DNA of 64,000 nt from Caecitellus pseudoparvulus (Eukaryota > Protista > Bigyra: Bicosoecida). The stretch is from positions 682,001 to 746,000 of the forward strand of contig CBFFRQ010000067.1 of NCBI GenBank assembly GCA_965644315.1, in the 5' to 3' direction. The notes below the pieces were generated by a model. It saw nothing but the letters and a program-made list of their open reading frames with translations. It had not been told where the DNA came from and did not search any database. This document shows positions 23,220 through 64,000 of this stretch, piece after piece (within the stretch, counting starts at the first letter, position 1; every line of letters begins with the position of its first letter). Made by a program: the position numbers and the translations under genes.

Positions 23220-26200
23220 CTACTGTTCGCTGGACTCCAAGCTGTCCGTGCGACCAGGCTGTGGCTCATCCAAACTCAGCAGCCCTGACGAGCCGAGCGT
23301 CGCCTCCAAGTCGTCAGCTCCCAGCGAGTCTGACAGCGGCCGGCTGGCTGGTCGCTTGGACACCACCGCCCGAGAGCGCGTGCTGGGCCGCCTGGCCACC
23401 AAGGCCTCTTTGGCAGCCTGCTTGCTGGCCAGGGGCGAGGGGGTGGAGGGTGCCGACGCGCCCTCCACTGCGCAACAAGTGCAGCGCGCCATGGCAGCGT
23501 TGACATTGTCCAGGACTCTTTGAGCGGCGGCTGGGCCCAGGACCACCCGGGTGAGGTCAAAGCCGATATTGCATGCGAAGACAGCGGACATGCCCACCAC
23601 TAGTACCATGAGGAGGTTGGTGGTGTTGGACTCACGCGCTGCGCGCTCAGCTGCCTCCGCGCCTTCTCGACCAGTGCTCACTTCGAAGTTGGTGTCGGCT
23701 GCTGCGGAGGTGGCAGTGTAGTGCAGCGCCATAACGCAGCACAAGTGCACCATGGAGGCGGAGGTGGCTAGGAGGTTGGACCGACGGGAGGCGTACGGCC
23801 ACACCATGACTGTGATGAGGGTGTGCAGGAGCAGGACGCAGCAAATGCTCAGCACTTGCTCGTTGGGGTGGGACAGCGTGGCACCCACCAGGGCCACCCA
23901 CAGCACCCGGGCGTGCTCCACGACACTCCACCAGTACCTGCCATTCGAGTGCACGATCCAGGCTGTGAGGGGGTTGGACACGCTGTCTTGCTCCAGCACG
24001 TCTCCGCGCTCGTCCCGGGGCACCGGCGGCAGGACAACATCCGTCCCGCCGCGCTGCAGCTTCAACGCCGCGGCCATGAGCGCCCCCTGGCTGGGAGCGG
24101 AGGGCCCCCGCACCACCTGCTCTGCATGCAGGCCGGCCGTGCTGAGCGACACCACAGCGTCAGCGAGCCCCCTCATCCAGGGGTCCACACCCTCCTGGTT
24201 GCCGTCACTGGAAGGCTTGCTGGTCGCGGCAGGCGAGGCGGGGCGTCGAGGGCGACAGAGCCAGGTGAGGGAGGGGTGCAGGGAGGAGGGGGAAGTGGCC
24301 ACCAGCCCCCCCCAAACCATGCACAACGGCCAGGCGATGAGGAAGGTGACGCCAAACAGCACCGCCACCACCATGGCCCCCGCGTACCGATCGCTAGACG
24401 TGCTCTGCGTCACATCTGAGCGCAGCAGGTGCTCGCCACGCACTGACGTGTGCAGGGTGTCGAAGGTCGCAAACACCGACCGCGCGAGCGTGCTGTAGGC
24501 GAGGCAGAGGGAGCAGCCCACGACAGAAGCCAGGCCCAGCACGAGGCTGCTGCGCCAGTCGTACAGGCTGACCCACGGCCCCTGCTCCGAGGGGCGGGGT
24601 GGCGGCAGCCCTGCCCCGTCCACGTCACTCGGTGTCGGGTCCTCCTCCACGCCATCCTGCTGCACAGGGCGGCGCTGGCGACTGGCTCGGGCGACAGGCG
24701 GAGCGCTGGCGGGAGGAGGGCGTAGCGCACGGTGGATGGCCCCGGTGACCGTCGCGAACAGACTGGGCAGGAAGATGCACCAGAACACCGACCAAAACAT
24801 GGACGAGATGACGTCACCGCCAGCGGAGCGAGTGGGCCCATAGGCACACACCCAATTCAGCAGGTCCAGTCCAAACACGTCTCCCCACCCGCCCACTGCC
24901 TCAAACACTCGTCCAATGCCAGGGGCCACCGCCAGCTCCAGTGCGCCTGACAGCATGGAGAATAGCTGCGCCCACTGCCAGAACAGGCGAATGTGTGTTC
25001 CAAACTCGTCAACTGCGCTGAAATGTGCATAGGCGTACAGGTCTTGGTCCTTCGAGGGGGGACTCTCTTGGCCTGGGCAGGTGGCCATGACAGCCGGCGA
25101 AGGACGAGGGCGACACGCGACCCGCCCACAGCAACCCTGCCCCCGCAGCGCCACCACACCCTGGAACGAGCGGCAGCCCCGTGACCAGCACGCTCCTGGC
25201 TGCTGCTCATGCTGCAAGGCAGGGTGGTGCGTGCCCCACGTCAAGCTGCGGGGGGCGGGCATGCCTTGCTTGGCCTGGGCCGGCACTCGCATGAGGTGCA
25301 GTGCCAGCACTGGCACCAGGATGGACACGAGAAGAATGGACAAGGACGCGAGCGAAGCACCAGCTGGGCTCCAACAGGTGACACACGAACCAAACACGCG
25401 CAACCAGCCAGCGTCACAGGCAAAGCAGAGGGCTCCCGTATGTCCTGTTGCACACTCCACCACTGACTGACCTGCAGGTGCTGCTGCGGAGAGAGAGATG
25501 TTCGCCGCCACCGACTGGCACGCGTCGAAGTTGATGCAGGGGTAGATGGGGGTGGAGGTGGTGATGTCATCGAAACCCACGTCGTTCGTGAGCCACCAGC
25601 CATCACGCAGTGACAGCAGGCCACCTGAACACGCCGCGCCTCGTGGGGGGCACTGCATGCACTCGCTGGCGCCAACGTGGGAGAACGTGTTGCCACGGCA
25701 TGGCTGGCAGCTCTGCGCCAGCAGCGCAGCGGAAGCGGTCGTGCTGAGGTCATTGGGCGGCAGGGTGCCATTGCCCTGCCCTGCAGGCACCTGCGCTAGT
25801 CCAGCACCTGCTGCCGCACCCTCCAATGCCGCTGCCGCCGCCACGTCCGTGCGAAACTGCCCCCGCTGGCAGGGTCTACAGGGCTTCAGTGTATCCAGCA
25901 AGTCAGCGATGGTGATGCCCCCCACTACAGGGATAGTGCCAGGCGCCTCCAGCCCTGGCTTGCACCTGCAGCTGAGCGCATCAGATTCCAGGACTTGGGT
26001 TGCAGCGTGGCAGGAGGCGGGCATTATCTCCACCAGCCGATCCCGCGCGCCACCCACGATGCTGATGCCGCCATACGTCACCTCCAGGCTCAGCTGCCCC
26101 AACACATGCGCCTGGGATGCCTGGATGCGCACCGTTCGCGTCGCGGACCCGTGAGGTGTGACGAACCGCCAAGCTGAGGCAGGCAGGCGCACCCAGGGGG

Positions 26201-49914: not shown

Positions 49915-51569
49915 TCACTGCCCCGTGGGCCAAATGATCGCCCCATCCTCCTCATCCTCCTCCACAGCCGCCAAAGCCACCGCGGGCTCTGGGGCCTTGT
50001 CCACGGGGGGGGGTGGGGGAATGGCGCTTGCCGCGGCTTTCGTCGCGCGGCCGCCCCGGCCCCTCCTGCGTTTCCCATGTGCAGCGCGAATGGCGCCCAG
50101 GTCAATGTCCGCCTCGTCGTCAAACTCCAAACCCTCACTGCCACTGCCACTGCCATCATCAGCCTCGCCTGGTTCAGCAGCGTCTGCGGCACGGCCGCGC
50201 TTCTTGCCGCCTGCGCGTTTCGGCCGGGCTGCGGCGCTGACGAAACTCTTGCCCTCCACTGCCTGAAACGCAGCAGCGGAGGCGTCCGCCGCTGACACGC
50301 CAGTCTTCACAAACCCCGTCAACCCCCCCTTCTGCCTCGCAGCAGCCTTGCCAGATGACCCCCCCCCTTCACCCCCCTTTCTGCCCCGACGCCCTGACTC
50401 GGCAACCGTACTGGCCCCTGCCACGGGGGCAGTGGGGCTGACACTCCCACTGTCAACGTTCCCAGATGCCCCGCTGCCCGGTGCAGGTGGGGGCACGGGC
50501 GATCCCGCTTCACCCGTACCCTCCCGCTGTGCCCGATTCTCACCGGCAGTGGTGGCCGCTGCGGCGAAGGCTGCCTCGCGGGAGAGAGCGCCAGTGGACG
50601 CCATGAAACGGCCCATGGCCCCCTCCGTGCGGGCCAGTGGTGCCACGGCGCTCTTCTCAGCGCCATGCCGCTCATGCGTTGTGGACGCACCAGCCGAGTC
50701 TCCCCAACTCCGCTCAGCCGGGAAGTCGCCAACCCCCAGAACTGTGCTGAAGGGCAGGACGGAGCGAGCGGTAGAGGCGACGTCAGCCTCGGTCACTGTG
50801 CGTTTCGCCCCGCGCCGCTGCGCTGTGCGAGCTGCCGAAGCGGCCAGAGCTGTCAGAAACGCCTCCACGCTCTTCCCCAGCGCCAGGACAGCCTCTCGAG
50901 ACACTGCGTGGATGTCGGGGTCACCGGCCACCACACGGCGCAAGCGAGCAAATGGGAACATTTGAGAGTCCAGCGCCACCTCGCCTTGCTTCCCCCCCTT
51001 GGCCTTGCTGGTCTGTGCAATCGGCACGCCTCGTGCCAGCAGCTGCGAATGCCACGCGAGGGTTGTGAAATGGGGAGCAGCGGAGCAGCTTGCGGTAAGA
51101 GGCCACACTCACATCAGCCTTCAAGCGACCCACACGCGCCTTGTCAGCAGCCGCTGCCTCCTCGTACTTCTGCAGGGCAGGGGTGAGAGGGGCACGCGGG
51201 TGCGGAATTTGAACCAGCGACACCAAGCTTCGCGGGCCTGGTCCTCCTTCGGGCCACACCGAACGCACTTTGCGGTCCTCATCGGAGAGATTCCTCCACT
51301 TCTCGCCAGTGAGCTTCGCCAGGGTCCCCACGCTCTCCCCTGTGACGCACAGGCGCAAGTGCAGTGCTCTAGCTGCCCGCCGTTCAAATGCCGCACACCA
51401 CGCAGCTCGGCAGCTATGCCGTACCTGGGTGCTCAGCCTTGAGCTCCTCCCGCACCTCCGCAGCGAAGATAAAGTACGCTGACTGTGCCTTGGGCAGCTT
51501 CACAGGCTCCAAAGGCGCCTCAGCACCCGTCGGACTGCCTTCCTCTGCCTTGGATTCGAGCTGGCTCAT
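49915..51569 (-). CDS. HMG-box plus histone-fold (NF-YC/POLE4/CHRAC-like) fusion protein; exons 51569-51425, 51339-51269, 51169-51113, 51042-49915
   Basis: Spliced HMG box 'LPKAQSAYFIFAAEVREELKAEHPG|ESVGTLAKLTGEKWRNLSDEDRK|KYEEAAAADKAR' followed by 'FPFARLRRVVAGDPDIHAVSREAVLALGKSVEAFL..KRTVTEADV'; all three introns are GT-AG and in phase. Confidence 0.85.
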
Positions 51570-51849
51570 GGGTACTTGCAGTCAGCCTAGCTCGAGGTCT
51601 CAGGCCACTGCAGAGGGCCAAGCAGCATGGATCTGTGTGCAGTAGTGTACCGAGCATGCCAGGGTGTGGGATTTGTGCCGGGCGGGCTCGCGCAAGGTAC
51701 CCAGGCCTGTGAGAGCCTGGGTGCAATCTGCAAGCTTCAGCAAGCATGCATTCACACGGTGGCCCACAGAGAGATCTCGACACAAAGGAGAGTGGCAGGA
51801 AAGAAAGACAAAGCAACACTTATATCGCCCCCCTCCACGGCCCTGCGAC

Positions 51850-54800
51850 CTACACCCCGCCACTGCGACCACGCGAACGAGTGGGCGCGAACTGCGGGTC
51901 GGGCCGAGTTGCTTTGGGCACTGCCAGGGTCGCCTGCAGAGCAGCGGCCAGTCGCGTGGACATGCCGGGAGCCGACACAGAGGCCCCCCGCAGGGCTGTA
52001 GGGGAGGTGATCATGGCTGCAGCCGATAGGGAGGGTGCGCGACCCTGGCGACCGCCGGCGCTCGCTTCTGCGACGACGCGAGCATCGTCGGCTGCCCGAG
52101 GGCGGTTGCACCTCGCACACGCCGACGCCGAGTCGCCGTCAATGCCCATCAAATCCTCACTTGCAGCGATGAGCTGGGCGCCGTCCAGTGCCAGGGCTTG
52201 CCCGGCACTGGGCATGGCCATGTGTGCAAGCTGCACCCACTGCTGCCGGCCGCTGCAGATGCTGTTCGATCGCTGCGACCTGGCGGGGGGCGCCGCACAC
52301 AGCCCCACACGCACACACAGCGCCCTCAACACATCGCCCGCACCTGGCAAGGCCGAGGCGCCCACAGATCCAGCAGGTGGACGTGGGAGCGCGGGCAGGG
52401 CGGAGCGGAACCAGTCTGCCAGGGCGGCGGACCCTGCTCGTGCATACTGTGACGCGCCTCGCGCGGCGGCAAGAACAAGGGACAGCGCCGTCAGGCCGTG
52501 TACACACAGCATGAACACCGCCACTGCCGAGGACCCGGGAGCTGCCAGGGCCAGTACAATGTGCAGCAGGACTGCCAGGCCCACTTGCATGTCCTTGGTG
52601 TTCAGCTCTTTCAACGAGTACGGGCGCAGGGCATATGTGGCTGCAAGCATGACCAGCAGGCTACCTCCAATTACCAATGCACGCAGCAACGTGCTGGTGG
52701 TCAGCCACAGTGCGCAGAGGATGACGGCACTCTGCAAACTTCGCAGGAGAGCGAAGCCGTGACTCGGCACCCACCGAGCCACCCCACAGCAGCGGCTTTC
52801 CAGCCGTCGACTCATGCGTACGGACAGCGTGACGGCGATGCTGCTGCCATCCGCGTCCATCGATTTTTTTGCGTCCTTCATGGCCTGACGTGCCACTGCC
52901 GCAGCTTGGTTGGGGTTCAGCTGCAGGCGGTACCCTGCTGTGAGGACGGACAGCGTGGCACTGGCGTGGTGCTGTGTGTCCAGCAACTGCCCGGTCTGCG
53001 AACGCAACACGGCGAGGAAGGCGAGCGGGAAGACAAGGGCGTTCAAGATGAGGAACAGGGCCATGCCGGCGACGAGGGCGTCGTTGCCCACTCGCACAGC
53101 CAGGGAGGAAGGGAAGGCGTACTCCTGCCCTTGCACCACCCAGCCAGGAGCCAGCACTTGCAAGGCACTGCCGACGGCCGTGCCCCACAACACCAAGTAC
53201 AAAGACAGCACGAAGCGACAGAGAGTCCAGATCCAGATGGAGGTGGGACTGACCGCCCGTTCTTCTCGGGCCTTGGTTCTGGCCAGCACGGAGCGCGAGG
53301 AGGTACCGTCGTGCTCGTCGCCAGCACCGCCCTCAGACGTCGCGAAGAGGGGGTTCGCCGCTGCTGTGGTGGCAAAAATGCTGCCCCGCTTCGCCACGGT
53401 GCTGTTGCGGGTGGAGGAGGAAGCCGTGCGCTTCGCTACGCGGTGCAGTTGGTGGCTGGACAGCGTTGTGGACGAGCGAGCTGCCCTGCTCGCGGATCGT
53501 GCAGTCACGCGTTGCCACAAGCCGCGGCGGTGCGAAATGCACACAATGAGCCCCCACACGATGAGCAGCAGAAGGGAGGCAATGACGACTGTGCTCCACG
53601 CCATGGACAGGAATGCCCTGTCGCCCCCGCTGCAAGAGGTGGAAGTGATCGCGCCGAGCGGCAAGCCCCCCACGAGACCTGCCGCCGCGCCGAATGCGGC
53701 GTTGATCAGATCGCCAGCTGGCGTGTCTGACTCACCGGCCGCAGAATCGTACGCAGCAGCATCACTCCACCAGCCTGTCGTCCCGTTGGCGGGGCGGTGA
53801 GCCAGCACCATGTCCCTGTGGGACGCTGCTGACCTGCCACACGCCTCCTGCCACTGCTGCATACTGACAGCGCGCTGTCGCAAGCCGAGACTGGGCTCAG
53901 AAAAGGGCGCCAAGGCAATGGCCACGTACCCCATGAGTGCAAAGTAGCTGGCGAGGATGCGCACCGCCCCGATGAACAGGTCTTGTTCCAGCTTGCCCCG
54001 CTCCACAACACCTTGGTAGGAAAAGTACCCAAGCGCCACCACCAGCGCACAGGCAGCCAGACCCAGCAGCCAGTTCCACACTTGACCCGTGTCCTCGCAA
54101 GGCCTGCACGGCGCACAGGGCGAGCCGTCCTGGGCAGTGAAGCCCACCTTGCACGCGGCACACGCCCCACCCTCATGCCCCGCTGCGCACCGCAGGCGCG
54201 TGCCGCTCAGGCCGCCCACCTCACACGAGCCGAAACGCGGACACACTGCAACGCTGGAACCCGCCTCTGCTAGTGCCTCGGCGGTCTCACAGTCTCGGCA
54301 CCATGTGCCAGGCAGAGGGTGGTGAGGGCCACCGCCACTGCCCCCTGTCGCATTGCCGCCTGGAGGTCGCGGCCCGTCGCACGTGCCCCACCACGGCTCT
54401 TGGCACGGAGACGGGCTTGGCGACGGGGACACGGCAGGACCTCGTGCCGTTGAAGTAGAGGGAGACGGCGAGAGAGATGGCTGGGGCGTAGTCGTCTGAC
54501 TTGGGAACGCGGGGGGCGGTGTTGAGAAGGGTGTCTCGCTCGGCGAGACACCTGGACTGGGGCTTCTGCTCAAAGACACTGCCACAGTCGTCGAAGCGGT
54601 TGCGAGAGGCGATGCTGTCGCACTGGCGGCCGGGGTCTGCTGCTGTGGCGTCGTGGTCACGGTTGCACTGGTGGTTGGAGTTTCCGCGCTCGGGGATGAG
54701 GATGAGCTTGGGACGGCAGGTTGCCAGGGTGGCAGGGACAGCTGGGCCACCTGCCTGCACTGGCCTCGGAGCTGGGCTGGCTGAGGACTGAAGACTGCCT

Positions 54801-57800
54801 CGTGGCGCAGAAGCCACGTCGCACCACCGTTTGTGTCCCAAGGTGAGCCTGCCACGAGCAGCGGCTCACCGTGCACTGACACGGATGTCGCCAGTGCCGC
54901 ACCCAATCCCTGGCCGTCATCCAGAGATGCCCCCAGGTCAACATCCAGGCGGCCGGGGAGCACAGACATGCCATAGAAGGCCGGGACCAACTTTCCATCC
55001 GCCCAGTCTGTGCCGAGGCGGTAGGATGCGATGGAGCCCTGGCCTGCGTTCACCCCAGGCGCGCCGACGAAGAGATCAATCGCTCCAGTCACAGGCACGT
55101 CAGGCACCATCCCCAACGCCGCTCCAAACTTGGCGGTTGAGTTTTCGAAGTCTCCTGCGGCGTTGTTTGTGGGCTGAACTCGCAAGAGGTGGATCAGGCT
55201 GCCCGCTGTCGTGTTCAGGGACATCACCCACACACCGTGGGAGCCCCCAGGCCCTGCCAGCTCGTCCAGCACCGTTCCGACTGTGAGCACCATGTGGGAG
55301 TAGCCAGGCACTGGTGTCCAGGCAACGGACGTGCCCAGACCTGTGGCATCGGAAAGCGCCAAGCCAGTCAAATCGTTGGAGCCTGTGTGTACACACGCTG
55401 CCGAGGACAGGACCACACCCATGACAGGTGAAATGTACACCGTGAACAGCACAACCGCACCTGGCTCCTGTCCTGGTCCCGGGCGTTGAAACATTGGTGC
55501 ACCCACAGCGAGCACCGCAGCAGGGTTCCCGCTTACGGTCTGCTCTCCACAGAACGCGAGGGAAGCACCGAATTCCATGGGTCCTGACCCGACTGGCATT
55601 GCCTCGCGGATCTGGGGCATGCTCGGGGTCACAGCTGACGCCCCAAGCATTGCGCCTTGAGCATCCAAGGCAAGCAGGTACACGGTGTCGTTCCCAGGGG
55701 CCCCCACTGCGAGGTCTGGCTCACCGTCAGCAGTGATATCTCCAAGGGCTGCCAAAGACGCCCCAAAACGGTCGCCCACCTTCAACTGCAGTGGAGACGC
55801 AGCAAGCCAGTGCAGCGGGGCTCGGGGCACAAGGCCTTCGGAAATGCTCAGGTGCACAACAGCCACGTCGCCTCTTCCTAGCACACCTGGCGCACCAGTG
55901 GCAACCCACATGCTGTCTGAGTCTACTTGCCCGCCATTGCAAAGCACAGCCACGGCTGCGCCGAATTCGACGTTTGGACCCAGGGTCATGCCGAGAAATG
56001 GTTGCCCGGGTGAAACGAAGGGACTTCCCGTCGAGGCCCGGTGATAGTTGCCCAGGGCGGCAAACGCTGCGAATTGGTGGACACTGCGGTCGCGGATTTG
56101 CGGCAGTTCAGCTGTGGAGTTGGCGGTTTTGGGCAACAGGTTCACATCCACGCGGAACAATGCCACAACACCCTCAGCGGGCTGCATGGTGTCGAGGTTT
56201 CGGGACAGGGATGGCGAGCCAACGGCTGCCCACGTCGCATCACCAAAGCGGAAGCTCGTCAACGATGCATGGCGGAAGCTCGTCAATGGACCGTATTCTT
56301 GAGTAGTCGTGTTCAAGAGAAGCAAGCCCAAGTCTGTGGCTGTTCCCGTGCCCAAGGAGCCTACGTACACTCCTCCAGTGTCGTTCTGCGCGGCGCCGTC
56401 ATGCTCCGCAGCCGCGAGGAGGGACACTTGGCTCGCAGGCCAAGCACCCAACACGGCGACAGAAGAGCCCCATGCCGAAGTTCCAGGGGGCGCGCCCAGC
56501 ACCCGGCTCACGTTAATCGTCAACACAGCCGTCAACTCAGCCAGCACGATCGTCTCTTCTCCAGTACAGCCGACGGCAAGGGTGATCCAGCTGCCGGTTT
56601 CACTTGGGAAAGCAGCCAGGCTGCTTCCAGCCTTGGCACCCGCATCTCCGGGCATGTCTGCCCAGGGCCCAGCTGGATGGTGAGGGCCCAGGGTAAGTTG
56701 CAGTCCATTGGTATCTGGGATGCCATCTTGCTTCAGAGCAGTGAGGAACACGCGCCCCACACGGTTGTAGCCCACAATGCTCGAACCAGGCGCACCGATG
56801 GCAAGGACCGGCGGAGTGCTTGCAAACCCTTGCTGCAGTCGAACAAATGCCGACCCAAGTTCTTGCACAGTAATGCCAGTTGCTGGCCCAGGCGTAGATG
56901 AGAAGCTGTGAAAGTCGGCCACCTGCCCTGACGGAGAGAGAAATAGAATATACACGCAGCCGGTGGGACCCTGGTCTGGTGCGCCGACGACAAGGTCAGG
57001 GGTGCCGTTCCCATCAAGGTCGCTCAAGGGAGCAACTGCAGCACCGAGCCGGCTGTGGGCTGGGATGCCTGCGAACGCATCGTGAGAAGAGCCCAGGAAA
57101 GTCGTGTGCACTACCGAGAGACCATTTGCTGGCCTGGGAGAAATGTGGAGCAGCAGCACTCCGCCGGAGGGGTCCACAGATTGGATGGAGCTTGTGCCCA
57201 TGTAGGTTGTGCCGGGCAGCCCAACAGCCAGCACGCCCACGTCGGGGTCAGAACCAGGTGTTGTAGTCAGGGGGCCAAGAAAAGCGAGAGACGCACCAAG
57301 CTCAGCGTCCAAGCTGATCGCATGGGGTGGGGGAGGCAGTACCCCTGCGTGCAGCAGACTGCTGCCAAGCACCGCTGGCGGCTCAGGCGCCGGACTGTCC
57401 TCGCCGCTCACAAGGCAGAAGTCGGACAGAGATGGTGCCTGAAACGATCGCTGCAGCCACATTTCACGCAATTCCCCGAATTCTGACATTGGGCGCCCTG
57501 CAAACAGATACAACTTTGTTCGGGTTGACCAGGGTGCCCGTCCTAGGCTGGTGCCTGTGCCAAGGTCACCAGGGAGAGGTTCGGACACCACGCCAAAGTG
57601 CTGGCCGATGCGTGTCACACCAGCAACCGTCCAAGGAGAGGAGGTGCGATTGACGTCCAGGAGCAAGAAGGCCCCTGCTTCCGCAGCATCTCCCTCACGT
57701 AGACCCTCTGCGCCCACAGCGATGGTGAACAGTGCCTCATCTGGGTTGCGGCCGAGGCTCGTGAGCGAGCTGCCGAGTGTTGCGCCAGGGTGTAAGGTGC

Positions 57801-60800
57801 TCTGCAAGGCAAGTGACACGTCGTCGAACACATGAACACCTACAAGGCTTTCCCCGGCGCCAAGTTCGAGAAGGAGCAGTGTTCCCGCAGCCCCCCAGCC
57901 TGGAGCACCGACAAACAGCTGGGCACAAGCGCCGCCACCCGCGCCTTCGTGCTGTGCACCAGCAACTGCTGCAAGACTCGTCCCGAATAGTGCGCCTGCA
58001 CCAATGAAAGGCGTGAGTGTGGCGTTGTCTGCCGACAGTATAACATGCTTCACGAGGCCTGCGCCTCCCCAGTACATCATGATGACTGCGCCGCTGCTCG
58101 CGAAGTCGCCTGTGCCTCCACCATACTCAGGAGCACCAGCGGCAGAGACCAGGTCCACTTGCGATGGCCCGTTCGGCTCTCCCGCAAATCCAATACTAGC
58201 CACAGATGAGCCGATCTTGGAGCCTGTCAGCGCAGAGGGTCCAAGCAACGGGCTTGGTGCGTTCGTGTCCGAGCTGCTCGCCGCTGCAACAAGTTCACCG
58301 GTTGCTGCTAAATGAAGCATAGTCACAGCGCCAAAGTATGAATCAGTTCCAGGAGCTCCCGCCAGCAGAGATTCGGCACCATACTGTGGCAAGTGCCCGG
58401 CGGGGGCCAGGGAAGCACCCCAGCGGCGGAGCGAACTCGACCATGCAGGGGTATGGGGCAGGTCATCAAAGGACACTTCCTGTATCAGCCGCAATGCGCC
58501 GGAATCTCCCCAAATGACATCCACTCCACCCGTACCGGAGTCTGCCATCGGAGACCCTACGGCAATGCTTGCGTCGCCATTTCTCTCGTCAATGAAGTGC
58601 AAGGCGATGATCGCGGAGCCGTACTGACTCGGCAGACCGCTTGGAGATGCATGGGCAGACATGGATACAGTTGCAGGCCGGTGACCGTCACATGTTCCAG
58701 GCAGCACACTACCCGAGTTTGGCAGCGTCAGCTTCCAGGCTGTGCCATGGCGGGCGGTGGCATCATCGAAATCCTGAGACGCACCCACAAGCAAGCCAAC
58801 CTTGCCTGTGCTCGTTTCGTCAGCGGCTGCCAGCGCAGACCCGAAGCGTGCGCCTTGTGAAAGCGCGCTGTTCAAGCCTTCGGAATAGGGGCGCACTTCA
58901 TGCAGAGGGGTCCAGGTGCCTGATGCGTTCAACGCTAGTACGTGCACAAGTCCATGGGAACCAGCGCCTGGATGTCCCACTGCAAGCTCAGGCACGCCGT
59001 CAGCCCACAAGTCCCCGATCGGAGCTACGGCAGCCCCGAAACGCCCCCCCGCAAGTGACAAGAGGCCAAGGCTTGCCGGCTCCATCAGCACCATGCGGCG
59101 CAAGGTGAACCCTGGACCTCGAAGCAGGATCCCCACGGCGCCGGAACCGTCCACGCCATACCCGGGCATACCCATGGCAAGGTCGCAAAGTCCATCCCCG
59201 TCAATGTCAGGCAGCGCTGCAAGCGAGGCGCCAGCTTCGTGTCCGCTGCGATCAGCCAGCAAGCTACCTGCGGCGTCTGGAAAGTGGCTGTGCAAGGCTG
59301 CTACGACGGGGCGGTATTGACTGTCCAGGGCGACAAACACAATGGCGCCGGCGTGGTGAGCAACTTCTGAACCAAGCGGTGCTCCAACGACTATTTCTGG
59401 GCCCGCGTGAGTGGTGTCCTTGCCAACGAGTGCTGTGATGGCGCTGCCAAACTCGGAAGAGTTTGACACCGGCCCAGCTCCCACTAGTTCGCAATCGGCC
59501 CCCGTCAGGGCAGCCCTCACTGAATCAAAGCCAACGCCATTCAGCTTCACAAACCAGACGACTCCACCCACATCCAGACCTTCGTCTCCGGGGGACCCAA
59601 TTGCGATAGTGTTGGCTGCCACTCGAGCAAGCGCTGAGCCGAATCGACCATGTACATGTCGTGGAGGAAGGGAGGCGCTGGAGAACAAGGTACTGTCAGG
59701 AGTGAGCTTCAGCACGCTTTCCACGTCTCCCGAGGGGTTCTGCATCAAGAACGCGACGACGCCCGGTTTATCACCTGGGTTCGTCTGCATGTTTGGGGCG
59801 CCGACAACAAACGCCAGGTCATCTAGAAAAGCAACTGCGGTGCCAAACTCGGGGGGCTGCAAAGACGCCCAAGTAGACAGCTGGGGAGGATCATCGACCC
59901 GGAATGGCGTGAAACTCTGCACAATACCAGAGCTCAGAATTGGCACTGAGCATGCACATGGAGAAGAGGTTGACCCATGCGCGACAGTCAAACTTGTTCG
60001 AAGCACGTGCACGAGGCCTTGCGTGGCAGCATTGCCTGGAGCACCGATTGCCAGCGTCACTCCACCTGTCTCAGGATCCACCAAGGACGCCAGACTCGTG
60101 CCAAAGTCGTCCCCGATGGACATGTTGGTTGCGTAGTTCCCATCTTCCAAGGAAAGAGCCTGCCAGCCTGCAATGGACATGTTGCCGGGTTCATGCTCTA
60201 AGTACAGCACTACAACTTGACTCGTGTCAGTGACGTGGCGCCCGGGTGCTCCGATCAGCAGGTCTGCCACACCATTGCCATCAATGTCGCCTGGGGACGC
60301 TAGCGCAGCACCGAACTGCAGCCCAGTCAAGCCAGCACCTCGCAACTCTGGCCTGGTGGCAGGAATGAGCTGCAGGCCCTGTACGGTCGCGTTGGGGCTG
60401 AGGAACACGAGTACAACCCCCCCAGAATGAGTGCCATCAAGCTCTAGGTTCGGGGCACCCACAGCAAGGTCACATCCTCCGTCTAAGTCCAGGTCCGACA
60501 CCAAGGCAAGTGAGTGGCCAAAGCGGGCGCTGCGCGGGACAGGGGTAAGGCCGGGCACGTCACTGTGATCAATGAGCACCGAGCCGGTCACTGATGCAAA
60601 GGAGACATGCATGAACAGCAAAAACACTTGCCCGGATCCAGGGGCACCGGCAGCCACATCTGGAACTTCGTCCAAATTCCGGTCGCCGAGCCCCACAGCT
60701 GCAGCGCCAAATGCATGTGCAGGGGCAATGCCCAGGGAGGACAGGTGTGGGTCAAGGGTAGCGTTGATGTAAGTTGTCGTGACACCGGTCACGGGGCCGT

Positions 60801-63800
60801 TGCGCAGGAACCACAGGCTGCCTACTGCCCCGCTGTCGCCGTCTGGAACAGAGCCCACGAGCCAGTCCTGAACGCCGTCGCCGTCGACATCCCCAGCTGC
60901 CGCAACGGAGGACGCAAAACTTTCGATACTTGTCGATTCAAGCTCTACGGGGTTGCCACTGTACACACCTTGCACTTCAGGAAAGCCCCAGGGCTGTGCC
61001 TCAGACTGGGGTGGCCGCAGCGTGACGTTCCCCACCCAGCCCATGCCCCCACCTCGCTCTTCGCCAGGGACTCCAACACCAAGGAGTGGAGCTGAGCAGG
61101 TCAACTCATCACACGGCAAGAACGCCAGCGCCATTCCCAAGATCCCTCCCTCGTCCTGCATGCTCAGGGCAGCAGTACCTTGTGCGGCAACCCCGCTCAG
61201 TTGCTGGCTTGAAAGGACAAAAGGAGCGGGACTCCAGAGGGGCAGGGGCTGAAGGAGTTCGCTTGAGAAATTTGCAACCCACACATCCCCTCCCTCTGGC
61301 CGCTTCCCGCTGAACATCGGCCCCCCAGCAGCGAGAGTGATCCCTCCTGAGGGATGATAGTAGCTTGCCAACGCCTGTCCTAGTCTTGGTGACTGCGAAA
61401 ACTCCACCTCGGATAGAATCCCGCTTCCGACTCGCGCATCTTCAGTTGCACCCCAAGCCACAGCAGGTTCATAGTCTGCGACAGGAGACTGAGCCAAGAG
61501 CATCAGGTGGAAGCCACCAGCGTTTGATGCCCCTACAGAGCGCCCTGGCATCCCGACTGAGAGCAGAGCGCCCCCGCTTTCACGATCAATGCCCAGACCC
61601 GCAACCGAAGCACCAAACAAACATGGGCCGAAGCACTGGGCCAGCAGGCCGTGAGAAGGGGCTGGAGACGCTTCACTGACGGGTTTCAACGTGTGATGGA
61701 AAATCGGGCGACCTTGCACGTTGAGACGCAGAAGAATAATGCAAGACCGCAACCTGTCGTGTGTGGTCGCTCCCACAAGAATGTCAGGCAACTGCAGGCT
61801 GTTGGGCGACGGCAGGGCTGCCAAGGAAATACCCATTTCTGTGAACTCCGCCAGGCTGCTGTCATCCTCAAGCGTGTCGCAGAGAAGCGCGGTGTTGGCG
61901 ACTAGGCCTTCGTGGGGTGCACCAGGGTCAGCCTTCAAGGAAAACCGCCACAAATCGCACTCGCTCGATTGTGGTGCGCCAACAACGAGCTCAGGGACGC
62001 CGTCCCTGCTACGGTCGCCGACGAACACAACGGAGCTTCCAAACTGACTGATCTCAGCAGCGGGGGTGCTTGACGTTGTGTAGATCAAGTCCGGCGCCCA
62101 GATGGTCTGGTCCAGGAGAAGGACTTGGGAGGACAGTTGCAGAGTCCCGGCTGATGGGGCTTCCAAGCCAAACACGGTGACTTTACCACCTGAGCTCTCA
62201 CCTGGTGCTCCAACAGCAAGCTCAGCCTCAAACTGGGTGCTTGGTCGGAGGAACGCCGGCGCAACCGCAATTGCAGCGCCAAACCTATCATTCGCGGAGG
62301 GTGTGAATGGGCCGAAAGAATCACCTGCCCCGAATTCGAACACAAGTGATGGAGCTGCTGGCGAGGAAAAGTCAACAATCATCACTGATCCCGCGTAAGT
62401 CATAGTACCCGGTGCTCCGACAAGCAGCGTGGGCTGCAACTCTTCGCTGGCATTTGCAGACTGCAACCAAGCCAGCGCTGAGCCGATGTGAACAGTGTCT
62501 ACAGCCTCAGCCAGGGTGGATGAGATGTTGTGCGTTCCCGACAGAGAAGCGGGTTGGACGAAGCGCCGTGGCTGTCCCGGGTGCACAAGGTCTGAGCGAT
62601 CCCAAGGCGCTGACGAGTTGATGGCAAAGAGGCGTCCAGGAGGGCCACCTTCGATTTGCTCCACCACCCACCAGGCAAGCCCTTCTCCGAGGTGCCCGGG
62701 AAGTGCGAGCACAGCTTCGCCAAAGCCAGAGCCAAAGCCAGCCCCAAAACCACCTTGCCCGTTTGGTCCTGGATGCAGCACTTCGTACCCTTGCTCGACG
62801 ATCACCGAAGGGTCTCCGCCGTCCCACTGGAGGTCAACCGTCCAAACACGACCTTCCCTGCGGTCGCCCTGGCCATCTGCTGTGTAGTTTGCTGCAGAGA
62901 CAAGAAGGTCTGCGACACCGTTTCCTGCACTGTCCCCCATGCTCGCCAGGGCCGAACCGAACCTTCCGTACGGCTGCAAGTTACCAGCCAAGCCGCCAGG
63001 CTGCAGAGATGAGATCAGGTGCGCTGTCAATGGCGCCCCAGATGGCATGGATAGCTCAACAAGCACAACAGCCCCGTCTCGTGCATGAACGCCTGAAAAA
63101 CCGGGAACACCCACCGCCAGAAGACGCAGAGCGTTGTCTGGTCCACTATACAAGGGGGCCAGGGAGCTCCCGAACAGGGGCTTGTCGCTTGTCGGCAACC
63201 ACGATGAAAGGTTTGTGTTTGTCTCCCCCGACACCTCCTGCCACGGCTGCTGCGGACTCGGCTTGCCGCTTTGCTCAAGGTGAACGATGGCCACAACGCC
63301 CCGTCCTTTGGACGCAGTAACAATGCTCGCAGGCGAGTCTCCGCGGGGTGCCCCGATGGCCACGTCTGGCACTCCGTCGCCACTCAGATCCCCGACCGCC
63401 GTCACAGCAGCACCAAACCACGTCGCAACATCTGCATGCACTGATAGGATACCAGCGGCTCCATGACCCCAGTCTATTCGTGTCAAGGGCTCACCGCCAG
63501 CAGTGAGGCAGACAACGACAACCCTGCCTTTTGCGCCGGCCTGCGGGACTGCCGGAGCGCCAACAATGATATCCTCTACCCGGTCGCCGTTCACATCACC
63601 CACCAGCGCGACGCTGGCTCCAAACTGCAAGTTGTGCCAGTTTGGCGTGTTGGCCGATCCTTGGGGCGTAATTCGCTTGCAGCTTTGCACGCTACCGTCG
63701 TTGCCGGTGAATAAAATGGCGACGCTGCCGATGAACGGATGCCCGGTGAAAAAGTTGAACTTCGGGTTCCCAATCACAAGTTCAGGGTTGCCATCACGGT

Positions 63801-64000
63801 TCAGGTCTCCCGCATATGCCAGCCCCGTTCCCACCGCATGAGTCAAGGAGCAGAGCCCCATGTTGCCCAGGTCTGTCACATGGAAGCCCTCCACGCCAGC
63901 TTCGAGTCGACGCCGGCCAAGCGAGCCAGGGATCATCGCATCTTCAGAGACAGGCAGAAGGCTGCATGCTGAGAGAGCGTGGTCTGGGTCGAGTGGGAGG
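51850..64000 (-). CDS. Giant FG-GAP (integrin-alpha-type beta-propeller) repeat surface protein with Ser/Thr/Pro stalk, Cys-rich module and ~9-TM domain; 5' end probably outside the window
   Basis: ORF of >4028 aa that stays open to base 64000. 42 FG-GAP units (e.g. FGASVALVGDVNGDRVEDIIVGAP); stalk ~54720-54410; 'CAAGHEGGACAACKVGF'; TM segments ~54080-52460. Confidence 0.92.
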   Translation of the reverse strand, partial: LPLDPDHALSACSLLPVSEDAMIPGSLGRRRLEAGVEGFHVTDLGNMGLCSLTHAVGTGLAYAGDLNRDGNPELVIGNPKFNFFTGHPFIGSVAILFTGNDGSVQSCKRITPQGSANTPNWHNLQFGASVALVGDVNGDRVEDIIVGAPAVPQAGAKGRVVVVCLTAGGEPLTRIDWGHGAAGILSVHADVATWFGAAVTAVGDLSGDGVPDVAIGAPRGDSPASIVTASKGRGVVAIVHLEQSGKPSPQQPWQEVSGETNTNLSSWLPTSDKPLFGSSLAPLYSGPDNALRLLAVGVPGFSGVHARDGAVVLVELSMPSGAPLTAHLISSLQPGGLAGNLQPYGRFGSALASMGDSAGNGVADLLVSAANYTADGQGDRREGRVWTVDLQWDGGDPSVIVEQGYEVLHPGPNGQGGFGAGFGSGFGEAVLALPGHLGEGLAWWVVEQIEGGPPGRLFAINSSAPWDRSDLVHPGQPRRFVQPASLSGTHNISSTLAEAVDTVHIGSALAWLQSANASEELQPTLLVGAPGTMTYAGSVMIVDFSSPAAPSLVFEFGAGDSFGPFTPSANDRFGAAIAVAPAFLRPSTQFEAELAVGAPGESSGGKVTVFGLEAPSAGTLQLSSQVLLLDQTIWAPDLIYTTSSTPAAEISQFGSSVVFVGDRSRDGVPELVVGAPQSSECDLWRFSLKADPGAPHEGLVANTALLCDTLEDDSSLAEFTEMGISLAALPSPNSLQLPDILVGATTHDRLRSCIILLRLNVQGRPIFHHTLKPVSEASPAPSHGLLAQCFGPCLFGASVAGLGIDRESGGALLSVGMPGRSVGASNAGGFHLMLLAQSPVADYEPAVAWGATEDARVGSGILSEVEFSQSPRLGQALASYYHPSGGITLAAGGPMFSGKRPEGGDVWVANFSSELLQPLPLWSPAPFVLSSQQLSGVAAQGTAALSMQDEGGILGMALAFLPCDELTCSAPLLGVGVPGEERGGGMGWVGNVTLRPPQSEAQPWGFPEVQGVYSGNPVELESTSIESFASSVAAAGDVDGDGVQDWLVGSVPDGDSGAVGSLWFLRNGPVTGVTTTYINATLDPHLSSLGIAPAHAFGAAAVGLGDRNLDEVPDVAAGAPGSGQVFLLFMHVSFASVTGSVLIDHSDVPGLTPVPRSARFGHSLALVSDLDLDGGCDLAVGAPNLELDGTHSGGVVLVFLSPNATVQGLQLIPATRPELRGAGLTGLQFGAALASPGDIDGNGVADLLIGAPGRHVTDTSQVVVLYLEHEPGNMSIAGWQALSLEDGNYATNMSIGDDFGTSLASLVDPETGGVTLAIGAPGNAATQGLVHVLRTSLTVAHGSTSSPCACSVPILSSGIVQSFTPFRVDDPPQLSTWASLQPPEFGTAVAFLDDLAFVVGAPNMQTNPGDKPGVVAFLMQNPSGDVESVLKLTPDSTLFSSASLPPRHVHGRFGSALARVAANTIAIGSPGDEGLDVGGVVWFVKLNGVGFDSVRAALTGADCELVGAGPVSNSSEFGSAITALVGKDTTHAGPEIVVGAPLGSEVAHHAGAIVFVALDSQYRPVVAALHSHFPDAAGSLLADRSGHEAGASLAALPDIDGDGLCDLAMGMPGYGVDGSGAVGILLRGPGFTLRRMVLMEPASLGLLSLAGGRFGAAVAPIGDLWADGVPELAVGHPGAGSHGLVHVLALNASGTWTPLHEVRPYSEGLNSALSQGARFGSALAAADETSTGKVGLLVGASQDFDDATARHGTAWKLTLPNSGSVLPGTCDGHRPATVSMSAHASPSGLPSQYGSAIIALHFIDERNGDASIAVGSPMADSGTGGVDVIWGDSGALRLIQEVSFDDLPHTPAWSSSLRRWGASLAPAGHLPQYGAESLLAGAPGTDSYFGAVTMLHLAATGELVAAASSSDTNAPSPLLGPSALTGSKIGSSVASIGFAGEPNGPSQVDLVSAAGAPEYGGGTGDFASSGAVIMMYWGGAGLVKHVILSADNATLTPFIGAGALFGTSLAAVAGAQHEGAGGGACAQLFVGAPGWGAAGTLLLLELGAGESLVGVHVFDDVSLALQSTLHPGATLGSSLTSLGRNPDEALFTIAVGAEGLREGDAAEAGAFLLLDVNRTSSPWTVAGVTRIGQHFGVVSEPLPGDLGTGTSLGRAPWSTRTKLYLFAGRPMSEFGELREMWLQRSFQAPSLSDFCLVSGEDSPAPEPPAVLGSSLLHAGVLPPPPHAISLDAELGASLAFLGPLTTTPGSDPDVGVLAVGLPGTTYMGTSSIQSVDPSGGVLLLHISPRPANGLSVVHTTFLGSSHDAFAGIPAHSRLGAAVAPLSDLDGNGTPDLVVGAPDQGPTGCVYILFLSPSGQVADFHSFSSTPGPATGITVQELGSAFVRLQQGFASTPPVLAIGAPGSSIVGYNRVGRVFLTALKQDGIPDTNGLQLTLGPHHPAGPWADMPGDAGAKAGSSLAAFPSETGSWITLAVGCTGEETIVLAELTAVLTINVSRVLGAPPGTSAWGSSVAVLGAWPASQVSLLAAAEHDGAAQNDTGGVYVGSLGTGTATDLGLLLLNTTTQEYGPLTSFRHASLTSFRFGDATWAAVGSPSLSRNLDTMQPAEGVVALFRVDVNLLPKTANSTAELPQIRDRSVHQFAAFAALGNYHRASTGSPFVSPGQPFLGMTLGPNVEFGAAVAVLCNGGQVDSDSMWVATGAPGVLGRGDVAVVHLSISEGLVPRAPLHWLAASPLQLKVGDRFGASLAALGDITADGEPDLAVGAPGNDTVYLLALDAQGAMLGASAVTPSMPQIREAMPVGSGPMEFGASLAFCGEQTVSGNPAAVLAVGAPMFQRPGPGQEPGAVVLFTVYISPVMGVVLSSAACVHTGSNDLTGLALSDATGLGTSVAWTPVPGYSHMVLTVGTVLDELAGPGGSHGVWVMSLNTTAGSLIHLLRVQPTNNAAGDFENSTAKFGAALGMVPDVPVTGAIDLFVGAPGVNAGQGSIASYRLGTDWADGKLVPAFYGMSVLPGRLDVDLGASLDDGQGLGAALATSVSVHGEPLLVAGSPWDTNGGATWLLRHEAVFSPQPAQLRGQCRQVAQLSLPPWQPAVPSSSSSPSAETPTTSATVTTTPQQQTPAASATASPLATASTTVAVSLSRSPSPGVSPSETPFSTPPPAFPSQTTTPQPSLSPSPSTSTARGPAVSPSPSPSPCQEPWWGTCDGPRPPGGNATGGSGGGPHHPLPGTWCRDCETAEALAEAGSSVAVCPRFGSCEVGGLSGTRLRCAAGHEGGACAACKVGFTAQDGSPCAPCRPCEDTGQVWNWLLGLAACALVVALGYFSYQGVVERGKLEQDLFIGAVRILASYFALMGYVAIALAPFSEPSLGLRQRAVSMQQWQEACGRSAASHRDMVLAHRPANGTTGWWSDAAAYDSAAGESDTPAGDLINAAFGAAAGLVGGLPLGAITSTSCSGGDRAFLSMAWSTVVIASLLLLIVWGLIVCISHRRGLWQRVTARSASRAARSSTTLSSHQLHRVAKRTASSSTRNSTVAKRGSIFATTAAANPLFATSEGGAGDEHDGTSSRSVLARTKAREERAVSPTSIWIWTLCRFVLSLYLVLWGTAVGSALQVLAPGWVVQGQEYAFPSSLAVRVGNDALVAGMALFLILNALVFPLAFLAVLRSQTGQLLDTQHHASATLSVLTAGYRLQLNPNQAAAVARQAMKDAKKSMDADGSSIAVTLSVRMSRRLESRCCGVARWVPSHGFALLRSLQSAVILCALWLTTSTLLRALVIGGSLLVMLAATYALRPYSLKELNTKDMQVGLAVLLHIVLALAAPGSSAVAVFMLCVHGLTALSLVLAAARGASQYARAGSAALADWFRSALPALPRPPAGSVGASALPGAGDVLRALCVRVGLCAAPPARSQRSNSICSGRQQWVQLAHMAMPSAGQALALDGAQLIAASEDLMGIDGDSASACARCNRPRAADDARVVAEASAGGRQGRAPSLSAAAMITSPTALRGASVSAPGMSTRLAAALQATLAVPKATRPDPQFAPTRSRGRSGGV

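Follow-up and report, generated by a model that had tools for sequence, protein, structure and literature searches.

The window analysed here is a 64,000-nucleotide (nt) stretch of the Caecitellus pseudoparvulus genome (C67:682001-746000; assembly of 30.6 Mb in 215 contigs). Its last 12 kb, on the minus strand, carry most of a gene for a giant FG-GAP receptor. The predicted product would consist, in order, of a signal peptide, an N-terminal region, seven six-bladed propellers, a stalk of ~136 amino acids (aa), a disulfide-rich, DUF7630-like Cys module, nine helices and a 200-aa tail. An initial annotation of the window had described an uninterrupted open frame of more than 12 kb with 42 FG-GAP units, about a third of them with Ca2+ loops, followed by a stalk rich in Ser, Thr and Pro (S/T/P), a Cys-rich module, about nine hydrophobic helices and a tail, and it had placed the start upstream of base 64000. 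These features withstood the follow-up reported below; the arrangement of the FG-GAP units had to be corrected.

The reading frame occupies window positions 51850-63936 and encodes 4028 aa when counted from the in-window ATG, which is the numbering used throughout. No stop occurs in frame up to base 64000, and adding the next 4 kb extended the open frame by 298 codons upstream. It continues 830 nt outside the window, opening at C67 746830, and measures 4326 codons from stop to stop. At the guanine-plus-cytosine content of this region (60-66%; ~64% for the window), one stop is expected per ~37 codons, so a frame of this length did not arise by chance. The in-window Met lacks a signal-peptide-like start. 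Codon 33 of the upstream extension is a Met followed by MGRALVALIGICSLAAGS, at a window-equivalent position of ~64734 (C67 746734), ~734 nt outside the window. The MGRALVALIGICSLAAGS start combines a single basic residue with a hydrophobic core of 13 residues and some small residues. By eye it looks like a signal peptide, and a product of ~4,294 aa likely begins at this Met. There is little space for an additional exon, because an upstream FG-GAP giant ends ~290 nt before this likely start codon. We read the receptor as a single intron-free gene of ~13 kb. A bacterial promoter and terminator scan at the 3' end was empty, the method being irrelevant for a eukaryote.

The putative signal peptide is separated from the first FG-GAP unit by ~230 aa (L009:937-1734, minus strand), which lie just outside the window. 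The N-terminal region matches no Pfam family and has no paralog in the genome, and its recognition by the ESM Atlas stays below the level of a real family. WxGL/WxDG-like strings had raised a C-type lectin identity for the N-terminal ~266 aa; this was discarded, being unsupported by Pfam, paralogs or Atlas.

The repeat region accounts for most of the protein. Pfam recognised FG-GAP in ten stretches of the receptor (E 2.9e-39) and FG-GAP_3 at E 1e-12. We counted units with a hidden Markov model (HMM) iterated on the protein's own repeats, at a cut-off of i-E<0.01. This model found 37 units plus three weaker in-register ones, with a spacing of 63-87 aa, and ten shuffles of the repeat region yielded 0-1 matches. 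Two gaps of ~160 aa each have room for one degenerate unit, which brings the total to 40-42. Cation loops of the D-x-D/N-x-D/N-G-x-x-D/E type are present in 11 units under a strict pattern and in 13 under a relaxed one; in block 1, Ca-type loops fall in units 1, 2, 3 and 5.

The grouping of these units emerged from windows of six. Unit-by-unit and four-unit lag scans were nearly flat, with no clear period, and a self-BLAST for long internal repeats returned the identity match alone. When each six-unit window was compared with all non-overlapping ones, the best partner was 6, 12 or 30 units away in 20 of 37 cases, and none lay at lag 7, 14 or 21. A seven-blade organisation was rejected on these grounds. 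Long or degenerate units fall at positions 6, 12, 18, 30 and 36, and the resulting blocks measure ~400-450 aa each (starts in Table 1).

We then modelled blocks 3 and 4 together (aa 915-1790) with AlphaFold2 (AF2), using a 14-row alignment, A2. Two of its rows are internal blocks set in six-phase, which is a caveat on the six-blade model. The model, with a predicted local distance difference test score (pLDDT) of 67.5 and a predicted template modelling score (pTM) of 0.50, splits at low-confidence aa ~1319-1358, a stretch that coincides exactly with the block border. Its first domain has 24 strands and its second 23, corresponding to six four-stranded blades each. In structure comparisons, both resembled integrin alpha propellers (Z 24-27 over ~335 residues, root-mean-square deviation 3.8-4.6 Å, 17-21% identity), with the best integrin alpha match spanning chain residues 2-432. 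Six-bladed templates were covered almost whole and with smaller deviations: the NHL domain of TRIM2 (271/281 residues at 3.1 Å), a GH93 arabinofuranosidase (328/365 at 3.6 Å), EupfF (306/339 at 3.4 Å) and paraoxonase (288/338 at 3.4 Å). We read the ectodomain, on this modelling, as seven tandem six-bladed FG-GAP propellers, that is, seven blocks of six units and not six of seven.

Downstream of the propellers, an S/T/P-rich stalk leads into a Cys-rich module directly before the membrane. Twelve Cys lie within aa 3178-3280. We aligned the receptor's C-terminal region with 18 paralogs (alignment A1), in which eight Cys of the module are invariant (CPRxGxC...CxxGHxGxxCxxCxxG...CxxCxxC). Hydropathy of the membrane part gives 8-10 peaks, and an AF2 model built on A1 (pLDDT 77.9, pTM 0.79) contains nine membrane-length helices. 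The loop after the second transmembrane (TM) helix is outer, 99 aa long and structured; the loop after the third is inner, 93 aa long, disordered and rich in Arg, Ser and Thr (53248-53526). Helical inner segments precede TM6. In A1, several TM residues, a GYR motif and, in the outer loop that follows TM2, one Trp and two Cys are invariant or close to it. Lys and Arg near the helices number 16 inside and 6 outside; this positive-inside count and the AF2 model agree, and fit a topology with the N terminus out and the C terminus in. The first ~60 aa of the tail are conserved in close paralogs and the remainder is low-complexity. Near its end stands FAPTRSR, a possible sorting or docking motif; [FL]APTRS[RK] occurs near the C-terminus in three of six close paralogs.

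Table 1 Features of the FG-GAP receptor gene and its transcript fragments. Positions refer to the window, residues to the count from the in-window ATG.
Feature	Position	Strand	Residues (aa)	Remarks
In-window part of gene	51850-64000	-		Unbroken frame; third-position strain differences
Stop codon	51850-51852	-		
In-window ATG	63934-63936	-		
N-terminal region (in-window end)	63841-64000	-		~298 aa before the repeats, mostly outside the window
FG-GAP block 1	62491-63840	-	33-482	Five clear units and a gap fitting a degenerate sixth
FG-GAP block 2	61141-62490	-	483-932	Six units
FG-GAP block 3	59857-61140	-	933-1360	Six units; modelled six-bladed beta-propeller, 24 strands
FG-GAP block 4	58633-59856	-	1361-1768	Six units; modelled second six-bladed propeller
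FG-GAP block 5	57307-58632	-	1769-2210	Five units and a gap fitting a degenerate sixth
FG-GAP block 6	55972-57306	-	2211-2655	Six units, two weak
FG-GAP block 7	54775-55971	-	2656-3054	Six units, one weak
Mucin-like stalk	54367-54774	-	3055-3190	136 aa, 48-62% S/T/P
Juxtamembrane Cys-rich module	54091-54366	-	3191-3282	DUF7630-like
Nine-helix membrane domain	52453-54090	-	3283-3828	Hydropathy, AF2, hhalign
TM1-TM5 (AF2)			3283-3311, 3316-3341, 3441-3470, 3564-3595, 3619-3646	
TM6-TM9 (AF2)			3725-3745, 3749-3770, 3776-3798, 3803-3828	
Cytoplasmic tail	51853-52452	-	3829-4028	200 aa
Metatranscriptome contigs	52325-53605			Membrane part
Metatranscriptome contigs	54322-54593			Cys module and stalk
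Metatranscriptome contigs	55915-56850			Propeller part

A Pfam scan of the module returned nothing above threshold. DUF7630 (PF24633) matched the receptor at E 0.063 with 13.9 bits, below its cut-off of 27. This weak match recurs in 19 of 19 subfamily members, the best at 3.8e-6, and distant relatives in databases reach the cut-off or come close to it. PF06011, the family of the fungal Pkd2 and Flc proteins, gave no match at E<=10 in any of the 19 subfamily members. Weak Pfam matches to JAMP, S1FA, New_glue and DUF308, all below cut-offs and limited to short stretches, were taken as chance.

Comparing profiles revealed a distant relationship. We used hhalign to compare the receptor profile with nine aligned modules of the paralog branch that is PF06011-positive. 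The whole module matched that branch over 378 columns with 98.5% probability (E 2.2e-15), and the TM part alone reached 78% (E 1.8e-5). This second match falls on the last helices, the same stretch that PF06011 recognises in its targets; reversed controls stayed at 0.2-0.3%. An ESM Atlas fold search gave template modelling scores of 0.42-0.53 to several eukaryotic clusters, which carry DUF7630, Ephrin_rec_like with TRP (PF06011), LRR with DUF7630, or Chlam_PMP. One PF06011 cluster aligned over 219 residues at 3.0 Å, with a score of 0.59 by that row, and the Atlas feature search gave 0.93-0.95 to the same kinds of clusters (PF06011: 0.94). Among solved structures, a Foldseek search with the membrane model found no match at E<=0.001. 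A VIA-wide search reached at best a Z of 8.2, to unrelated helical bundles, a value that lies within noise when the model is helical. The Foldseek and VIA matches listed include no TRP or polycystin chain, and chains of G-protein-coupled receptors (GPCRs) appeared at noise level alone. These comparisons suggest that the module is a diverged branch of a DUF7630 plus PF06011-like superfamily, though a non-member by Pfam's own threshold, and that the membrane domain is probably a diverged, distant relative of the fungal Pkd2/Flc 'TRP-like' domain. The TRP/Pkd2-Flc-like C-terminal domain that the initial annotation named as a check is probably right as distant homology, by hhalign and the Atlas, but not as a direct PF06011 match.

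The same cassette recurs throughout the genome. The module matches 59 places at ~40 loci. For DUF7630 there are at least 102 places in the genome and for PF06011 26, seven of these above the Pfam cut-off; PF06011-matching frames also bear DUF7630 ~1 kb upstream. The nearest paralogs are 37-44% identical to the receptor within the module and keep the same order of FG-GAP, S/T/P stretch, Cys module and TM part. At least 13 open frames join FG-GAP heads to the Cys-plus-nine-helix cassette. These counts place the receptor in a large genomic family of predicted proteins in which this one cassette lies beneath many different ectodomains. The best PF06011 match in the genome, L037 (C141:9933-11921, plus strand, E 6.4e-12), contains seven in-frame TGA codons and could be a broken copy, a gene with introns or part of a contig of different origin.

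We extended the survey with a full HMM search with A1 across 1.84 billion representatives. At E<=1e-30, 27 proteins cover the whole module, and ~1,000 more match the Cys module and first helices alone. Seven weaker relatives were scanned: all seven have DUF7630 beside the membrane part, one has a sub-threshold PF06011 match, and most bear other heads (Ephrin_rec_like arrays, LRR with CUB, Chlam_PMP). FG-GAP proteins among the strong matches are P0001 (3299 aa), P0009 (4760 aa) and P0013 (5074 aa). P0001, ~37% identical to the receptor, is apparently either the C44 paralog itself or its counterpart from a marine metagenome scaffold. P0009 and P0013 have modules that reach no more than 34-39% identity in this genome, so the two come from other organisms; the best match of P0009 is this receptor gene. 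An S/T/P-rich stretch stands at the position equivalent to the stalk in P0001 and P0009, in P0009 directly before the Cys module, and P0013 retains the order of FG-GAP followed by module. Occurring in at least 13 frames here and in metagenomic proteins of other organisms, the fusion of FG-GAP head and membrane cassette is old and maintained.

Further members of this class lie nearby. Within the window, a 1026-aa frame of the same class at 1879-3330 (plus strand) has a DUF7630 match at C67:683879-684019 and also matches the C-terminal half of the module (C67:684677-685330, E 1.7e-7); it is row L036 of A1. A 1509-aa frame may be another receptor of the superfamily, with a below-cut-off DUF7630 match at window positions 25374-25457 (minus strand, E 5.6e-4). 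The upstream, head-to-tail neighbour (C67:747027-757991, minus strand, loci L009/L010) is a 3655-aa frame with FG-GAP repeats, several hydrophobic helices and a Cys module that has diverged further (CPNPLAC...CAAGHEGELCASC). The neighbour's frame ends at 747027, leaving ~200 nt to the point where the receptor frame opens. Receptor and neighbour stand in tandem and represent two different branches of FG-GAP receptors.

Public data offered a view of variation and expression. We mapped contigs of four public runs on window positions 51500-57400, and the run of a related strain (95-99% identity) covers every bin of this interval. One related-strain contig of 1,990 nt (52673-54662) covers the gene from the membrane part to the stalk, Cys module included, and differs by 43 substitutions without a gap. 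Third codon positions hold 30 of the 39 listed strain differences within the frame, tail and membrane part included, and this bias indicates that purifying selection acts on the receptor reading frame. Just 3' of the stop, at 51716-51827, the related strain (run X4) has small insertions (CCGG, C, C), and no indel lies inside the frame; this pattern is consistent with a non-coding 3' region that begins at the stop. A marine metatranscriptome contains short contigs of 150-275 nt that are 98-99% identical to the receptor gene (Table 1). No splice joints were seen in the mapped contigs. A word-index search of a protein collection with the module alignment returned nothing, a result that carries no weight given its length band. 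The whole protein gave a best match of 32% identity over 17% of the query, the exact protein being absent from that collection.

We compared the receptor with known systems. With integrin alpha it shares FG-GAP blades and D-x-D/N-x-D/N-G-x-x-D/E cation loops. Integrin alpha has one seven-bladed propeller, whereas the receptor is modelled with seven tandem propellers of six blades each, and its cation loops, unlike those of integrin alpha, are not restricted to the last blades. The absence of legs and of GFFKR asserted in the initial annotation was borne out: no thigh/calf match (Integrin_alpha2) appeared in Pfam on the whole receptor at E<=1, and GFF[KRN][RK] occurs nowhere in its sequence. 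Where integrin alpha ends in a single TM helix and KxGFFKR, the receptor has nine helices. Adhesion GPCRs and polycystin-1 share only a layout, with a long adhesive ectodomain, a mucin-like stalk and a multi-pass domain in one chain. Pfam found no GAIN/GPS, REJ, PLAT, 7tm_2 or PKD_channel domain on the receptor, so the analogy drawn earlier to these proteins holds for layout but fails for domains and fold. The receptor is neither an integrin alpha nor an adhesion GPCR, nor does it belong to the polycystins.

The closest functional precedent is fungal. The receptor is probably linked by profile-level homology, via the PF06011-positive paralogs, to the fungal Pkd2/Flc proteins (PF06011; Schizosaccharomyces pombe Pkd2, Saccharomyces cerevisiae Flc1-3, Aspergillus TrpR, Cryptococcus Flc1), and both have a large outside N-terminal part, a polytopic membrane domain and a cytoplasmic tail. 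The fungal head is an ML-like TRP_N domain, for which Pfam gave no match here, compared with ~3,000 aa of FG-GAP repeats, stalk and DUF7630-like module in the receptor. Fission-yeast Pkd2 is the only relative whose mechanism has been tested. Its N-terminal domain faces outward, its tail lies within the cell, and it confers stretch-activated Ca2+ permeability in reconstitution (PMC9727806); that paper places it at the plasma membrane. Yeast Flc proteins are described as regulating calcium homeostasis and flavin transport (PMC9600462). The PF06011 literature concerns fungi alone, and a literature search for DUF7630 turned up no paper mentioning it.

Proteins of a similar kind have been glimpsed in related protists. 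Kang et al. 2020 (10.1101/2020.04.29.069435) set aside from integrins stramenopile FG-GAP proteins 'with 7 transmembrane or more', one of them from Cafeteria. Pirsonia diadema, a diatom parasite, has 445 integrin-like FG-GAP/EGF genes, whose products vary in TM number and are proposed to take part in contact with the host (PMC13524835, 2026); the Pirsonia proteins measure 360-2,680 aa and have EGF domains. Both sets resemble the receptor family in being FG-GAP surface proteins of heterotrophic or parasitic stramenopile-type protists with variable TM number, expanded families and a proposed part in contact with host or prey. The six-blade organisation, the DUF7630/PF06011-like cassette and a domain analysis of the membrane part are not in either paper. 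The architecture is in part already described: many-TM stramenopile FG-GAP proteins were noted in 2020, and the cassette and six-blade order are absent there. New here are the FG-GAP units in sixes and the profile-level tie of the membrane module to PF06011-positive paralogs. We regard the receptor as a real, well-defined six-blade FG-GAP rod variant of a partly known receptor class.

No match to Chloroa_b-bind (PF00504) was found in a search of the whole genome, and this lack of light-harvesting-protein genes points to an organism that is likely heterotrophic. For the receptor, the explanation we favour, at slightly better than an even chance, is a one-gene product of ~4,300 aa in which a Pkd2/Flc-related membrane domain relays binding or pulling by the ectodomain. 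The ectodomain would bind a surface ligand on prey, substrate or matrix in a cation-dependent manner. Binding or pull would pass via the stiff Cys module to the membrane domain, which would act like fission-yeast Pkd2, as a stretch-activated Ca2+-permeable pathway, or would signal via the inner loop and tail. We prefer a long tethered binder that pulls on a Pkd2-like domain because of the Pkd2 precedent and the anatomy of the protein. A role as contact sensor or mechanosensor is our inference. The earlier interpretation was partly supported: its layout, a multi-propeller ectodomain with Ca loops joined by stalk and Cys module to a polytopic domain and tail in one product, stood, and a Ca2+-dependent sensor for prey or substrate is plausible.

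Several points weigh against this explanation. PF06011 itself has no match on the receptor at E<=10, and the TM-only profile match is moderate (78%). The searches of solved structures gave no relative of the membrane fold on which pore or gating features could be read. The six-blade organisation comes from a single medium-confidence model (pLDDT 67.5, pTM 0.50) of two of the seven blocks, and the signal peptide is judged by eye. The RNA support consists of short metatranscriptome contigs, in which DNA carry-over is possible and which fall short of one continuous mRNA. Functional measurements on family members are confined to fungi.

A purely adhesive role is a serious rival, to which we assign a smaller though substantial probability. 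The receptor would then be a passive adhesin or a coat or glycocalyx protein, with the nine-helix domain as an anchor or sorting device without channel or signalling activity. The ectodomain does make up three quarters of the protein, one cassette beneath many heads is expected for a generic anchor, and Pfam finds no recognisable signalling domain in the tail. One helix would be enough for anchoring, however, and the nine-helix domain, the Cys and Trp of the outer loop and an inner 'GYRxQ' are conserved in paralogs at 24-44% identity. The domain is under purifying selection, and its fungal relatives work in Ca2+ homeostasis (PMC9727806).

An endomembrane protein seems improbable. In that case an Flc-like protein of the endoplasmic reticulum, Golgi or phagosome would hold its FG-GAP units in the lumen and serve transport, homeostasis or phagosome processing. 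Its appeal lies in the PF06011 kinship, given the calcium and flavin functions of yeast Flc proteins (PMC9600462), and in the fact that lumen and outside give identical topology. Yet a 3,000-aa multi-propeller rod on a mucin stalk is what one typically finds in proteins exposed at the surface, and Pkd2 lies at the plasma membrane (PMC9727806). No retention motif turned up, none having been specifically looked for.

It is very improbable that the locus is not one gene at all but two adjacent in-frame genes, for a secreted FG-GAP protein and a membrane protein, or a decaying or mis-assembled copy. The mapped contigs include no full-length transcript, and the exact protein is missing from the protein collections searched. 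Set against this are 4326 codons without a stop, the gapless 1990-nt related-strain contig over TM part, Cys module and stalk, the third-codon-position bias throughout, and the same fusion in at least 13 frames here and in metagenomic P0001, P0009 and P0013. Least credible of all is a true integrin alpha homologue pairing with a beta subunit: blades with integrin-type cation loops and structural matches that include integrin alpha propellers at 17-21% identity recall one, but seven successive blocks of six blades, the missing thigh/calf and GFFKR, nine helices in place of one, and the exclusion by Kang et al. of stramenopile FG-GAP proteins with at least seven TM helices speak against it.

The receptor would join an adhesive head to a membrane domain of probable fungal kinship. 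In fungi, the PF06011 domain sits beneath a small lipid-binding head. Here, a PF06011-like domain would sit under adhesive rods of thousands of residues, in dozens of copies and with different heads. A broader and doubtful proposal is that the ~100 DUF7630/nine-helix genes make up a modular touch system, in which swappable FG-GAP, LRR, cadherin-like or other heads directly gate a Pkd2/Flc-type Ca2+-permeable module and the cell senses prey or surfaces via channels gated by ligand or force, and that the six-bladed FG-GAP propeller is a type separate from that of integrin. Novelty is tempered by the stramenopile proteins noted in 2020 and the integrin-like expansion in a stramenopile parasite published in 2026. 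If the module conducts or signals, proteins of this kind would unite adhesion with ion signalling within a single chain in a bacterivorous protist, a contact-sensing route that would have arisen independently of integrins and of adhesion GPCRs. FG-GAP propellers of six blades in tandem, as modelled here, would also bear on the origin of the integrin alpha head.

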